Below, in pieces: positions 2,251 to 12,037 of a DNA stretch of 64,000 nucleotides (positions are counted from its first letter, which is position 1; each line of letters begins with the position of its first letter). The notes below the pieces were generated by a model. It searched no databases. It was given only the letters and a program-made list of their open reading frames with translations, and was not told where the DNA came from. The stretch is taken from NCBI GenBank assembly GCA_025594325.1, contig JANHCV010000001.1, positions 4,216,001-4,280,000 of the forward strand, written 5' to 3'. The translations under genes and the position numbers were made by a program. The stretch comes from Blastocladiella emersonii ATCC 22665 (Eukaryota; Fungi; Blastocladiomycota).

Positions 2251-2744
2251 GCGATTTTGTACCACATTGCATGTCATATCACGTAGTCTTCCTAGTTCAC
2301 CCGCCGCGTTGAGAGCGCACCCGGGGCAATGGGCGCGTCCGGTGCAGCCGCGAGACACCCCCGGCTGAATGCGAGACAGTTGGTCATGTGACGGAGCGTG
2401 CTTAAAAACAGATCCGGTAAGCAGCCTGGGCGCGTGGGCTGCGCCGCAGCGCAAACGTGGGTGCGGCTTGCGACGCCTCCGCCCTCGTCGGGTCGCCGCC
2501 TCTTCGCTCGTCGGTCGCCTTCACCTCCTCAACCGCTACGCAACACTGCATTCGCGCTCCCGCGACTAGCTGCATCATTACAAGCGGAGAGTGTCACATA
2601 CACTCTCACCGTCGCCGACCCGCCCTTGTCCTCGCTGCTGCTGCTGCTGGCCACCAGCGCGAGTTCCGACGGTCTCCTCAATTAGACCCCATCCATCAAC
2701 TCGTCGTCAACTCGACTCGACCACCAACCAACCACTCGCACACC

Positions 2745-7224: not shown

Positions 7225-7625
7225 TCTGCCGTTGGGGGACAGATACGCGTCGGCGAGTGCGATTGGCAATACACGTTTCGGTGCTCGGCGCTCCCCACGG
7301 TCGCGACCACAGGAGGAGGGGAGAGGAAAAGCGGGAGGGACCCTTCCCCCGCATAAGTGGGTCATGCGAGCGAATTATTTTTCATCGCAGCGCTCCCACT
7401 CGATGGCCAATCGATGGATTTGGAGCGACGTCACGCTCGAGCGCGGGGACTGCTCATGCAGCCTCGAACGTGGCTGAGGCGCGGCGCGTCGCGATAGCGC
7501 GTCTGTCACGCGTCGAATGCAGCGATAACTCTCGTCCGGCCGTGTTGACGGAGCGAACGGCTCCCTTGCCCTCCTTTGCCGGCCGCGGTCTCTTTGCCGT
7601 GCTCTCCCACCTCTCCCGCTGGCCG

Positions 7626-7631
7626 TATAAA
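7626..7631 (+). promoter_or_regulatory. TATA-like box upstream of the putative alternative first exon of MDH
   Basis: TATAAA in very GC-rich context, about 110 nt upstream of ATG 7743, followed by a C/A-rich leader. Confidence 0.5.
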
Positions 7632-7742
7632 GCTGCCGCCGGCCCCGGGTCCTCCCCCCTCCCGACCTTGCACTGCGATCAACGACTACTACGAAGCGAC
7701 CTCTGCCCTCCCTCCCTGTAAACCATCCATCACCAACACAAC

Positions 7743-7805
7743 ATGTCGCCGACCCCGACCACCCTCCCCTCGAGCCTGCTCGCGTCCGACGCGGCCGCGT
7801 CTGCG
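7743..7805 (+). CDS. MDH1: Putative alternative first coding exon of malate dehydrogenase (isoform lacking PTS2)
   Basis: ATG 7743 opens 21 codons (MSPTPTTLPSSLLASDAAASA) ending exactly at donor GTATGC (7806). Phase-0 joining to CAG|TCT (8317/8318) is in frame with the MDH Rossmann fold. Confidence 0.6.
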
Positions 7806-8212
7806 GTATGCATGCACCCTACCCTGCGCTGCTGTGATGGATGCGCGATGATGGCCATGGCGACGACCTCCCTTCCCTTCGCTCTTCGCTCGCTCCCTTC
7901 CATGACCGCCGCGTGCAGCGAACGACGCGTGCCGCAAACGTGTTCCCTGCATGGGAGCGCCCAGCTGAATTCTTATCCGTATCGCAACGGCGGTCGGCAC
8001 GGGCGGCAAAAGCGAGGGCCAGGTCAGCCGACCCGTCAGTCGGGCCCCCGCGCGAGCCGAGCCGTCGGCCTTGCTCTCGACATGGGTCCCCCCTCGCACT
8101 CGCCAACAACAACTCGGGCCTTTCGCGCAACAAAACCCTGCCTTGCCCCCCGCACTCGCCCTCTCCTCTCGACCCACGCATACCCTATACACTCCCTACA
8201 CCACTTGTTGCC

Positions 8213-9572
8213 ATGGCCTCCTCGCCCTCCACTGTTGCCGCCGAGCGCATCCGCTCACTGACGCACCACCTGCGCGGCCCCGCCCCCCTGTCGCCCCTCG
8301 CCGTGTCGCTCGACCAGTCTGCCCCGCTCCGCGTGTGTGTGACGGGTGCCGCGGGCCAGATTGCCTACTCGCTGCTGTTCAGCCTCGGCACCGGGCTCGT
8401 GTTCGGCCCGACCCAGCGCATCGTGCTGCACCTGCTCGACATCCCCGCCGCCATGGATGCGCTCAACGGCGTCGTCATGGAGCTCGAGGACTGCGCCCTG
8501 CCGCTTGTTGCTGGTACGGTTTGACGGGATTTTTTCAACACGCACCTTCCCCTCGCCGTGGCGTTGCGCGCGCGCGTGAGCGGGTCCCTTGATTCGCTCG
8601 AGCGCGTGCGTGCGAGCGCTTTGCCCGATCTACCGCCGCCACACCTGCATGTCGAGCGTGAATTCTTCGCTAACCCACCCGACCCGACCCTCACTAGGCA
8701 TCGTCGCGACGGCCGACCCGCTCGTCGCCTTCGACAACGTCGACTGGGCCATCATGCTCGGCGCCATGCCGCGCCGCGAGGGCATGCTGCGCAAGGACCT
8801 GCTCAAGGCCAACGTCGGCATCTTCAAGGCCCAGGGCGAGGCGCTCGACCGCGTCGCCAAGAAGTCGGTGCGCGTCGTGGTCGTCGGCAACCCCGCCAAC
8901 ACCAACGCGCTCGTGTGCTCGCACTACGCGCCCTCGATCCCCGCGCGCAACTTCTCGGCCCTGACGCGCCTCGACGAGAACCGCGCCCGGTCCATGATCG
9001 CCAACCGCGTCGGCGTCGCCGTCGACCGCGTCAAGAACGTGGCCGTGTGGGGGAACCACTCCAACACCCAGTTCCCGTGCACGGACCACGGCTCGGTCCT
9101 GCTCGCCAACGGCACCACGGCGTCCATTGACGCGGCCGTCAACGACCCCGAGTTCCTCCGCACCACGTACATCAAGAACGTGTCGCTGCGCGGGTCCGCC
9201 ATCATCGCCGCCCGCAAGCTGTCGTCGGCCATGAGCGCCGCCAAGGCCGTGTGCGACCACGTCCGCGACTGGCACTTTGGCACGGCGCCCGGCGAGTTTG
9301 TCTCCATGGCCATCATGTCGGACGGCAGCTACGGCATCCCGCGCGACCTCATGTTCTCGTTCCCCGTGACGGTCGCCAATGGCGAGTGGACCATCGTCCC
9401 CGACCTGCCCCTCAACGACTTTGCCCGCACCAAGCTCGCGGCTACCACGGCCGAGCTCGAGGAGGAGAAGTTCGAGGCCCTCGCCCACATCCACGCTGAC
9501 GCGGCCGCGGCCGCCGCCGCTAACGGCCAGCAGCCACCAACGGCCGCGCGCCCCGAGGTCGCCGCGCACTAG
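8213..9572 (+). CDS. MDH1: NAD-dependent malate dehydrogenase, MDH1 (cytosolic/animal-type) clade, with N-terminal PTS2
   Basis: [62 protein letters not shown]. Intron 8514-8697. N-terminal RIRSLTHHL. Confidence 0.95.
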
Positions 9573-9748: not shown

Positions 9749-12037
9749 TCACGCGCGCCGCTTGGCCACGGGCATCCCGTCGCCGTTGAACGAGCACGAC
9801 AGCGGTCCACGCACCGTCTCAGCGTGCTCGACCTTGACCGCGAGCAGGAACCGATCGCCCGAAGCCGCGTCCGTCATCGGCACCATCCAGTTCCGCGTAC
9901 ACGCCATGCCCACGACGCCCGCGCGCCCGCCGCGCGGCATCATCTTGGCCCGGTCGCCCGCCGTGTACACGTTGGCCGCGGTCCCCGCCGCGTACCCCGC
10001 CGCGTACTCGCGCACGTCCATCTCGGGCCCCGCCAGCCCCGCGCGGTACGGCGACCGGCCCGCGTGCCGCGCGAGGACGCGCGCCGCAGGACCCGCGGCC
10101 AGGGAGCCCGCCCACGCCGTCTCCGGCGCGCGCTGTGCGCCGACCACGCCCATGGCTTCGAGCTCGTCGGGCGTCAGGCCCGTGTCGCTCGGGACCGCGG
10201 ACGCGGGGACCGTGATGATGGGAGCCGCGCACGGCACGTCGCCAAAGTAGGTCGCGGTGCGGCCGTCCGGCAGGGGGAACTCGGCGGCGAGCGCGGCGTA
10301 GCCCGACGCGGTGATGTTGGCGGGTTGCACGGTGGCGACGCGGCGCGACGTGCACACGCGCACGTTCGTCAGCGTAATCGTCGCGTTGTGCACGGGCGAC
10401 CAGCCGGTCCATGTCGGCAGGATGGAGGACGCGGCCGCCGGGCCCGCGCAGAGTGTCGGGTTGCACAGCGTCGAGGCTGGGAGGCTGGGCGCCTTGAAGT
10501 CGCGCGCGCACACGACGGCGAGCTCGACGGTGGCCGGGATCGCGGGCCGCGCGACGTAGACGTGGCGGAGCAGGTCGGGCACCGCGATCAGAATGGCGGG
10601 CGTGAGCACGGACCACGCGAACGTGAGCAGCGTGAGCGCCCACTTGGTCGCGCGGAACGGCCACGCCCGGTAGTAGTAGTGCGCGGGCCGGCGGCCGGCG
10701 CACATGCCGCAGCAGTGCGCGTAAAAGACGGCGGTCAGCAGCGCCGAGTCGCGCGCGGCCGTCCACGCTGACAGACCGAACCGCAGCGCCATGGGCACCG
10801 TCACGTCGCGCGGGCCCGCGTTCGCCAGCACCACGGTCAGCGTCAGCGTGTCGCGCAGGAAGATGCCCGCGACGGCGCGCGCCTTGGCCCCAGTGAACGA
10901 CGCCGCGTACAGGTCCCGCGCGCGCCGCCGGTGTGCGTGCGCCAGCGCCTGCGACCACGAGAAGCCGCGCGAGCGGACGCGGATCGCTGCGTTCAGGTCC
11001 CACGCGAACAGGAGCACGCCGACCAGTGTCGCGAGCAGGATCAGGTTGAAGGCCGCCGTCGCCCCGCTCAGGTACGGGAGCGCCGGGGAGACGAGCGCGT
11101 GGCACGCCGGCGTGAACGTCGCCAGGTACGCGATGTTGAGCGCCAGGTCCGCCACGCACAGGACCAGGTCGAAAAAGTACGCCGCCCAGTGCGCCGACAC
11201 CGCCGTCAGCGGCACGGGCGCCGGGATCCCGCCCGGCCCGTCTTTCCCCGCCGGCCGCGTCGCCGCGTCCGCGTCCTTGATCGGGTCCGCCAGCTTGCGC
11301 TCGCCGTGGCCGTCGCCCGACTCGCTGCGCAGCGTCTCGACGCTGCTCCCGAGACTCGTGCCCGCGCAGCTCGACGACGTCGGCGTCGACGTGAACGACG
11401 GCAGGTCGAGCGGGACCACGTCGCGCCGCGTCGGCCGCGCCGTCCCGTCGACCGCGTACCCCGCCGCCTGGTGCCGGTGGCCCGGGTACTCGACACCGCC
11501 GGCGCGCGCCTCGCGGATGACGGCGGCCATCATCTGCGCGTCGTTGGTCAGCTCGCTCGGGCCCGTGACGACCGCGACCGTGGTCTGCGCGCCCGTCGCG
11601 CTGTCGATGGTCACTTCCGTGAACTCGGTCGGGTCGAGCCACCCACTGCTGCCGGGGGCGACGGGCGGTGAGGTTGGGGTGGCCGGCGATGCGACGCGGT
11701 GTAGCGTGAGGCGCTGCGGCTCGCGATCGGGGACTGTGGTGGTAGCCGGTGCGCGGACCGGCCGCGCGAGGTGCATGGCCGACGACGGCGCGCGCGACCG
11801 CGGCAGCGGGATCTCGGCCGGGTCGACAGCGCCCAGGAACGTCGCGTCGGCGGGGCGGTCGGAAGGGAGGACCTGGTGCAGCACCGTCTCGCCAATGTCG
11901 TGGTGCACGGATCCGGTCGATGGCTGCTGCACCGTCGGCAGCGCGGAGCGCGACGGGGTCACGGTCGCGACCGAGGTCGATGTCGCCTGGCGCGCCCGCG
12001 CGTCGGTCAGGTCGACCTCCGGGTGGTTGGTGGACAT
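9749..12037 (-). CDS. Uncharacterised multi-pass membrane protein (762 aa, no intron seen)
   Basis: Long ATG-initiated ORF with a disordered N-terminus, 4-5 hydrophobic segments and a Cys-containing, beta-rich C-terminal region. It fits between its neighbours without overlap. No family recognised. Confidence 0.7.
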   Translation of the reverse strand: MSTNHPEVDLTDARARQATSTSVATVTPSRSALPTVQQPSTGSVHHDIGETVLHQVLPSDRPADATFLGAVDPAEIPLPRSRAPSSAMHLARPVRAPATTTVPDREPQRLTLHRVASPATPTSPPVAPGSSGWLDPTEFTEVTIDSATGAQTTVAVVTGPSELTNDAQMMAAVIREARAGGVEYPGHRHQAAGYAVDGTARPTRRDVVPLDLPSFTSTPTSSSCAGTSLGSSVETLRSESGDGHGERKLADPIKDADAATRPAGKDGPGGIPAPVPLTAVSAHWAAYFFDLVLCVADLALNIAYLATFTPACHALVSPALPYLSGATAAFNLILLATLVGVLLFAWDLNAAIRVRSRGFSWSQALAHAHRRRARDLYAASFTGAKARAVAGIFLRDTLTLTVVLANAGPRDVTVPMALRFGLSAWTAARDSALLTAVFYAHCCGMCAGRRPAHYYYRAWPFRATKWALTLLTFAWSVLTPAILIAVPDLLRHVYVARPAIPATVELAVVCARDFKAPSLPASTLCNPTLCAGPAAASSILPTWTGWSPVHNATITLTNVRVCTSRRVATVQPANITASGYAALAAEFPLPDGRTATYFGDVPCAAPIITVPASAVPSDTGLTPDELEAMGVVGAQRAPETAWAGSLAAGPAARVLARHAGRSPYRAGLAGPEMDVREYAAGYAAGTAANVYTAGDRAKMMPRGGRAGVVGMACTRNWMVPMTDAASGDRFLLAVKVEHAETVRGPLSCSFNGDGMPVAKRRA

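Follow-up and report, generated by a model that had tools for sequence, protein, structure and literature searches.

Our analysis addresses a question raised by a single gene of Blastocladiella emersonii ATCC 22665, namely how a fungus with one malate dehydrogenase (MDH) gene of the MDH1 type could supply that enzyme to cytosol and peroxisome alike. Peroxisomes need an MDH of their own to re-oxidise the NADH that comes from fat breakdown, and the known routes by which they obtain one are separate genes, alternative splicing at the 3' end and readthrough of the stop codon. Blastoclad zoospores carry lipid bodies as well as microbodies, the latter lying against the mitochondrion. The gene in question lies on contig JANHCV010000001.1 within a stretch of 64,000 nucleotides (4,216,001-4,280,000), here called the window, and the coordinates given below are positions in this window unless another locus is named. 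A preliminary description of the same DNA had proposed two alternative N-termini for the enzyme, one bearing a peroxisomal targeting signal of type 2 (PTS2) and one from which splicing deletes it. Comparison of the locus with its relatives and analysis of its composition suggest that this gene probably gives rise to two proteins through mutually exclusive first coding exons, here called 1a and 1b.

An MDH1-type enzyme with an N-terminal extension

The form of the gene that starts at ATG 8213 occupies 8213-9572 on the forward strand with a single 184-nt intron, and its translation, joined as 100 + 1 + 290 residues, is identical (100%) to the deposited protein P0001 of 391 amino acids. The Pfam domains PF00056 (Ldh_1_N) and PF02866 (Ldh_1_C) were matched across the translations of both exons, with E-values of 1.6e-19 and 3.8e-38, respectively, for the last exon, and the motifs TGAAGQI, MPRREGM, GNPANTN and WGNHS are all present in P0001. 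The closest structures in the PDB are the mammalian cytoplasmic MDHs 4mdh, 5mdh and 7rm9 (E ~1e-122), and the alignment places query residue 36 on chain residue 2 of the mammalian enzyme. Because these matches begin at residue 36, residues 1-35 lie outside the MDH1 fold and constitute a pure extension, which is precisely the segment that the proposed splice would remove. Outside the phylum the enzyme shares 57-63% identity with the MDHs listed, most of the named ones being cytoplasmic or MDH1 enzymes and from insects. The assignment to the MDH1 type made in the preliminary description is thus borne out by the structural matches, and the phylogeny groups the blastoclad MDH1 proteins as one clade with support of 100/100, the order of the Allomyces duplication relative to Blastocladiella being an unresolved three-way split.

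Two genes of the lactate/malate dehydrogenase (LDH/MDH) family were found in the 32.6-Mb assembly, of which one is MDH1-type. The product of the other is 28% identical to P0001, has no type 1 peroxisomal targeting signal (PTS1) and begins with MFASKIFARGFSSSS, which looks like a mitochondrial presequence. Since there is a single MDH1-type gene and the other member appears to be mitochondrial, any cytosolic and any peroxisomal MDH must both derive from the gene in the window. PTS1 is absent from the C-terminus of the B. emersonii MDH, and the frame read through its stop codon (context TAG CTC) does not terminate in one. The last exon ends in an Ala/Gln-rich tail of ~30 residues. Ala/Gln/Pro-rich C-terminal tails of ~25-45 residues occur in five blastoclad MDH1 proteins (window 9480-9569, P0002, P0003, P0006 and P0008), none of which has a terminal PTS1; animal MDH1 has no such tail.

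Two proposed first coding exons and a splice acceptor shared with relatives

Two 5' coding exons, each with an ATG of its own, lead into the enzyme body at 8318. Exon 1b is contiguous with the body, and exon 1a joins it in phase 0 and in frame across a 512-nt intron, the junction protein reading ...ASA up to the point of joining. The elements from which the preliminary description had built this proposal (TATAAA at 7626, ATG at 7743, exactly 21 codons to 7805, GTATGC at 7806, ATG at 8213, and CAG 8315-8317 as the next AG after CTGAC) were all recovered at those positions by direct reading, as was the phase-0 junction 7805^8318.

Several features single out exon 1a from the surrounding DNA. It is the only ATG-started open reading frame (ORF) in 7311-8212 that ends in phase 0 on a GT[AG]NG donor. 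The GC content at third codon positions (GC3) reaches 0.95 within exon 1a, 0.91 within 1b and 0.88-0.97 along the body, and falls to 0.63-0.68 in every frame across 7806-8212, a segment without coding periodicity. Only exon 1a in its own frame, together with the MDH frame from ~8234, yields 21-codon windows with GC3 of at least 0.90 in 7300-8330. The MDH frame itself is open for 124 codons 5' of ATG 8213 (frame 7841-8524), which is typical for DNA of 70% GC; by its GC3 this upstream part is non-coding, yet it could mislead gene predictors.

The same arrangement is found in two relatives. The deposited model of B. britannica consists of an ATG, 20 codons, a GTACGG donor, a 534-nt intron and the acceptor CAG/TCG GAG CCA ATT CGC, with the PTS2 ORF inside the intron; it therefore shows, at L001 4060^4595, the homologue of the junction that the preliminary description had predicted for the spliced form, and its mini-exon is likewise the sole ATG-to-phase-0-donor candidate upstream. 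In Catenaria an unannotated mini-exon (MSPTPVHSTQTSPQMLYRPL, L002 3233-3292) comprises ATG, 20 codons and a phase-0 GTATGA donor and lies 744 nt before CAG/TGC GAG CCT (junction L002 3292^4037), the PTS2 ORF being located between the two here as well. A mini-exon of 20-21 codons followed by a phase-0 donor is accordingly present in B. emersonii, B. britannica and Catenaria, and exon 1a starts with MSPTP in both B. emersonii and Catenaria. A candidate of 19-22 codons from ATG to donor, a range picked post hoc after the data had been seen, arose in dinucleotide shuffles of the respective regions at frequencies of 12% (B. emersonii), 0.8% (B. britannica) and 19% (Catenaria), which multiply to ~2e-4.

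The acceptor end of the intron is also shared. In all three species the acceptor CAG lies two codons before P-[LI]-R-V and also encodes a Gln in the long form, and it is preceded by AG-free runs of 70 nt (B. emersonii), 152 nt (B. britannica) and 133 nt (Catenaria), which fall in the 97th-99th percentile of the AG gaps of each sequence. A long AG-free run is a requirement of a distant branch point with selection of the first AG, and this answers the caveat of the preliminary description concerning the distance from branch to AG. That description had further placed the branch-like CTGAC within the PTS2 codons, and there it is, at 8258-8262, overlapping CTCAC at 8254-8258. Comparable motifs are found in the relatives, with ACTCAC inside the PTS2 codons of B. 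britannica and CTAAC three codons past the motif of Catenaria. Among 105 B. emersonii introns derived from expressed sequence tags (ESTs), the donors include gtacg (50), gtgcg (18) and gtatg (8) and the branch motifs ctgac (41), ctcac (33) and ctaac (9), such that the G/gtatg donor, the ctgac/ctcac motifs and the accag/ acceptor of the spliced form all have precedents.

A shorter intron at 7806-7918 (113 nt), which would be in frame and add an extension of 119 residues, was rejected on the grounds that 7919-8212 has a GC3 of 0.63 and no coding periodicity. No Rfam family was matched at E <=1 in 7300-8750, so no RNA gene was found in the long intron.

A putative PTS2 in the nested exon

Residues 12-20 of the ATG-8213 form read RIRSLTHHL and fit the PTS2 consensus (R/K)(L/V/I)-X5-(H/Q)(L/A) as quoted in PMC3798809, in agreement with the preliminary description, which had called 8246-8272 a PTS2 nonapeptide. 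Comparison with related genomes found the motif conserved. Equivalents are RIRSITHQM in B. britannica and RIQSFSRQI in Catenaria, each in an ATG-started, in-frame ORF (directly 5' of the MDH core in B. britannica), and Allomyces macrogynus, A. javanicus and A. arbusculus have RILAIA[HN]HL, within RRRILAIA[HN]HLRAP, in the ordinary first exon of one paralog. Among the best 120 MDH matches the PTS2-like motif is confined to blastoclad proteins. Between B. emersonii and B. britannica the nonapeptide shows 2, 0 and 5 changes at codon positions 1, 2 and 3, with three of its codons differing synonymously and three conservatively, which, as judged from these codons, is the pattern of protein-level constraint.

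The peroxisomal-type thiolase of the same fungus provides a useful comparison. It starts with MSATARVQQITSQI and has no PTS1, and a PTS2 is likewise retained by the B. britannica, Catenaria and Allomyces orthologs. As the thiolase retains this signal, the PTS2 import pathway is probably present in B. emersonii. The PTS2 of the B. emersonii thiolase carries Thr at position 6 and Ile at position 9, the same deviations as are seen in the MDH motifs, and among 76 homologous PTS2-bearing thiolases (mostly fungal) Thr6 occurs in 19 and Ile9 in 5. In Blastocladiella and Catenaria the last residue of the thiolase signal is Ile (RVQQITSQI, RVQQLASHI and RVQQLSSQI; P0121-P0123), as against Leu in Allomyces and in those chytrids that were checked. 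The difference hints that position 9 of the PTS2 may have relaxed in a lineage-specific way, matching the M and I endings of the B. britannica and Catenaria MDH motifs. The intron of the B. emersonii thiolase gene (seen at L012 ~2283-2411, minus strand) has a GTATGCATGC donor, identical to that of MDH exon 1a.

How the two forms would arise

In our favoured model, transcripts that start 5' of 7743 would use exon 1a, splice 7805 to 8318 and so drop the 35-codon PTS2 segment, the product being a cytosolic enzyme. A second class of transcripts would start within the 512-nt intron, in the ATG-free interval 8085-8212, and be translated from 8213. Their product would carry RIRSLTHHL, to which Pex7 would bind for delivery of the enzyme to the microbody, where MDH could serve an NADH/malate shuttle in support of beta-oxidation or the glyoxylate cycle. 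The intron's 3' end, with its branch-like CTCACTGAC, pyrimidine-rich AG-free tract and CAG, would be the same DNA as the PTS2-coding segment. We infer from the sequences both transcripts, the internal promoter, the use of CTGAC as branch point, the import, any connection with zoospores or life stage, and the physiological role.

The regions before the two start codons are consistent with this model. In B. emersonii the exon 1a ATG is preceded by 223 ATG-free nt, and the 1b ATG by 128 such nt. The corresponding stretches before the 1b ATG of B. britannica (253 nt) and Catenaria (274 nt) stand at the 97th and 99th percentile, respectively, of the ATG gaps of their loci, and in each of the three species a leader free of ATG precedes both start codons. 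The stretch before 8213 fits a separate 5' leader with a putative internal promoter, and the TATAAA element at 7626 is a putative promoter of the spliced cytosolic isoform. Retention of the intron was rejected as a source of the PTS2 form. Left unspliced, the 1a frame is closed by stop codons in B. britannica and Catenaria, and in B. emersonii it runs in another frame to 8261, with nine further ATGs before 8213. As intron retention cannot yield it, the PTS2 form requires a start site within the intron.

The 9-mer AAAGCTGCC lies upstream of exon 1a in B. emersonii (7629-7637, within TATAAAGCTGCC), and it also occurs in Catenaria (L002 3156-3164, within TTCAAAGCTGCC), 77 nt before the exon 1a ATG. 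This sharing could reflect a conserved core-promoter element or coincidence. A similar GTATAAAGC is found upstream of the short MDH paralog of A. javanicus.

One gene or two paralogs

The layout seen in the window appears to be common to Blastocladiella and Catenaria and to be split into two paralogs in Allomyces, where the PTS2 form and the short form are encoded separately. In the short Allomyces paralog a first exon of 14 codons is followed by an intron of ~600 nt whose TAG acceptor falls at the homologous position, and the PTS2 paralog has no AG at that position. No relic PTS2 was found in the intron of the Allomyces short paralog, nor upstream in Sorochytrium. The same short product, of 378 residues, is annotated in three Allomyces species; in A. 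javanicus (L007 3043-3643) the deposited first intron begins with GC (AAG/GCACGT) and is either a GC-AG intron or the result of a slightly wrong model.

Taken together, these observations allow a wider reading, which we offer tentatively, as a serious possibility that falls somewhat short of probable. Some 70-150 bases would encode a PTS2 and at the same time furnish the intron by which that signal is deleted with its branch site, AG-exclusion zone and acceptor, and this overlap would have been kept since the divergence of Blastocladiella and Catenaria. Allomyces would have escaped it by duplication, one paralog keeping the PTS2 and losing the acceptor AG, the other keeping the intron and losing the PTS2 ORF. 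Opisthokonts would then have three unrelated routes of MDH1 to the peroxisome, namely a readthrough PTS1 in animals, an alternative-exon PTS2 in blastoclads and a PTS2-bearing paralog in blastoclads.

The deposited gene models are incomplete with respect to this layout: the spliced form is missing from that of B. emersonii, the PTS2 form from that of B. britannica, and both from that of Catenaria. The model of Catenaria anguillulae PL171 (P0003) starts at an internal Met at 4001 of L002 and misses both the in-frame upstream PTS2 ORF (ATG 3839) and the candidate exon 1a.

Alternative explanations

The two-isoform reading is supported by comparative and compositional evidence, and several observations weigh against it. 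The deposited B. emersonii models come from the gene predictors of funannotate, and the accompanying paper makes no mention of RNA sequencing; exon 1a of B. britannica is known as a deposited model. It could be that the annotated PTS2 form, with the start at 8213 that the B. emersonii annotation chose, is the only one made, that 7743-7805 is a chance ORF, an upstream ORF or a non-coding leader, and that the B. britannica model is a predictor artefact. The peptides encoded by exon 1a show no significant similarity across species, with a Smith-Waterman score of 22 for B. britannica versus B. emersonii on a background reaching 31-34, and 98 of 300 shuffles of the query equal the best match in the region. 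The support for exon 1a is therefore positional, not sequence-based, and of the conservation of exon 1a looked for in relatives, the layout, phase, size and acceptor position hold in B. britannica and Catenaria and the peptide sequence does not. The shuffle result for B. emersonii taken by itself also leaves room for chance, and the 512-nt intron is unusually long, lying outside the 55-333 nt span of the 105 EST-derived introns, with ~56 nt from branch-like motif to AG. Chance or artefact would nonetheless have to produce a mini-exon of the same phase, size and acceptor position in three species, for which the shuffle product is small, as well as a high GC3 restricted to the 1a ORF and long AG-free runs before the acceptor in each species. 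It would also have to accommodate the separate Allomyces short paralog with its intron at the same site, and without exon 1a the cell would have no MDH free of a targeting signal. We consider it unlikely that the PTS2 form is the only product.

The converse, that Blastocladiella and Catenaria make only the spliced cytosolic form and that the PTS2 ORF survives untranslated from an ancestral first exon or is conserved as a splicing signal only, draws on the low, intron-like GC3 that the 1b segment shows in B. britannica (0.44) and in Catenaria (0.46) and on the fact that no clear TATA element was found before the 1b ATG. The overlap of the branch-like motif with the nonapeptide codons means, moreover, that some of the conservation could reflect splicing. 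We regard this explanation as quite improbable, since the 1b ORF is intact, ATG-initiated and in the frame of the enzyme in all three species, has a coding-like GC3 in B. emersonii, differs between the two Blastocladiella species by third-position or conservative changes, and is preceded by leaders of 128-274 nt that contain no ATG; the same motif stands in an ordinary first exon in Allomyces, and there is no alternative gene for a peroxisomal MDH. Both N-termini might also be made with an extension that does not work as a PTS2, being some other sorting or regulatory signal or a mere resemblance. The strict Petriv consensus does not allow the Thr at position 6 of RIRSLTHHL, the final M of the B. 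britannica motif and the final I of that of Catenaria depart from the classical consensus, and PEX7 was not located by a single degenerate pattern, a blank result that is uninformative. The B. emersonii motif nevertheless fits the broader consensus at residues 12-20, those of Allomyces are fully canonical, and the fungus's own thiolase signal deviates in the same way at positions 6 and 9, which makes a non-functional PTS2 very improbable in our view. The reading that we prefer remains that of one MDH1-type gene with two alternative first coding exons.

Coordinates and gene neighbourhood

The features that make up the locus are collected in Table 1. Downstream of the MDH gene, B. emersonii has an ORF of 762 residues on the minus strand (9749-12037). 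In B. britannica the 3' neighbours of MDH (L001 5897-7158 and 7230-8338) encode a Pex24p-domain protein, from a peroxisome-related family, and a protein of the enoyl-CoA hydratase family, and the two may mark a small neighbourhood of genes for peroxisomes and beta-oxidation. Upstream of MDH the same species has a gene for an SLC12-type transporter (L001 985-3738).

Table 1. Features of the MDH locus of B. emersonii, in window positions.
Feature	Position	Strand	Remarks
TATA-like element, TATAAA (7626-7631) then AAAGCTGCC	7626..7637	+	Read directly; 117 nt before the exon 1a ATG
Exon 1a, coding part: ATG + 20 codons (MSPTPTTLPSSLLASDAAASA), without targeting motif	7743..7805	+	
512-nt intron of the spliced isoform, containing the whole 1b-specific segment	7806..8317	+	
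Signals of the 512-nt intron: donor G/GTATGC 7806-7811, branch-like CTCACTGAC 8254-8262, acceptor CAG 8315-8317			
ATG-free stretch immediately before the 1b start codon	8085..8212	+	Preceding ATG at 8082
Exon 1b-specific segment, 35 codons, RIRSLTHHL at 8246-8272	8213..8317	+	N-terminus of P0001
Common part of the first coding exon; Rossmann fold begins	8318..8513	+	Ldh_1_N match
Constitutive intron 2, GTACGG...CTAAC...TAG, phase 1, 184 nt	8514..8697	+	Read directly
Last exon: rest of NAD-binding domain, catalytic C-terminal domain and tail	8698..9572	+	Stop TAG 9570-9572

Comparison with known systems

That core enzymes can be dually targeted to peroxisomes from one gene is well known. What would set this case apart is the combination of an MDH1-type enzyme, an N-terminal PTS2 and alternative first exons, one of which, the PTS2 exon, sits within the other isoform's intron and overlaps the 3' splice signals of that intron. 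The searchable literature on PTS2 with Allomyces or with cytosolic MDH yielded no report of an N-terminal PTS2 on an MDH1-type enzyme. If our reading is correct, such a PTS2 would be added to the known routes of MDH to the peroxisome, and the locus would represent a compact natural example of the overlap of coding and splicing signals. The contrast within one phylum between a single two-form gene and two specialised paralogs makes the system well suited to the study of subfunctionalisation.

A close functional parallel is MDH2 of Yarrowia lipolytica, for which PMC3798809 and PMC8124512 relate, with reference to Kabran et al. 2012, that alternative splicing gives cytosolic and peroxisomal MDH, a difference of 4 nt in the size of a 3' intron making or removing a C-terminal PTS1. 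In both lipid-burning fungi one MDH gene would feed the cytosol and the peroxisome by alternative processing of its mRNA, but the Yarrowia signal is a C-terminal PTS1, whereas that of B. emersonii is an N-terminal PTS2 brought in by alternative first exons, probably from separate promoters. The Yarrowia enzyme, in addition, belongs to the mitochondrial-like clade and not to MDH1. Within the MDH1 clade, stop-codon readthrough adds a PTS1 to human cytosolic MDH1 to give MDH1x (PMC4207609). A peroxisomal share of a cytosolic redox-shuttle enzyme is thereby common to the two systems, although the human mechanism is translational, C-terminal and dependent on PTS1 and Pex5, and that of B. emersonii would operate through transcription and splicing at the N-terminus with PTS2 and Pex7.

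Acquisition of an N-terminal PTS2 by part of the mRNAs or products of a cytosolic core enzyme has been described for 6-phosphogluconate dehydrogenase, by a mechanism that differs with the lineage. Alternative splicing of Candida albicans GND1 gives a PTS2-bearing isoform (Strijbis et al. 2012), and in Ustilago maydis PGD a cryptic PTS2 is made by non-AUG initiation (PMC7214817). The enzyme is a different one, however, and in B. emersonii the segment encoding the PTS2 is located within the other isoform's intron and would need a start site of its own, without non-AUG initiation. In Aspergillus nidulans, IdpA supplies isocitrate dehydrogenase to mitochondria, cytosol and peroxisomes through alternative transcription start sites (Szewczyk et al. 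2001, as listed in PMC3798809). There too, the choice of start within a single gene determines whether the product carries an N-terminal signal, but the signal that is toggled is mitochondrial, the PTS1 is constant, and no intron overlaps the signal.

The placement of the PTS2 on the protein itself is reminiscent of plants, in which Arabidopsis pMDH1 is a peroxisomal MDH used as a reference PTS2 cargo (PMC7710942). As in the plant peroxisomal and glyoxysomal enzymes, the PTS2 of the blastoclad protein stands on an N-terminal extension of MDH. The plant presequence is of similar length, at ~35-37 residues, and the plant glyoxysomal MDHs belong to the mitochondrial-type clade. In plants, unlike B. 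emersonii, the peroxisomal enzymes are encoded by separate genes, and in this respect it is the dedicated PTS2 paralog of Allomyces that represents their closer analogue.

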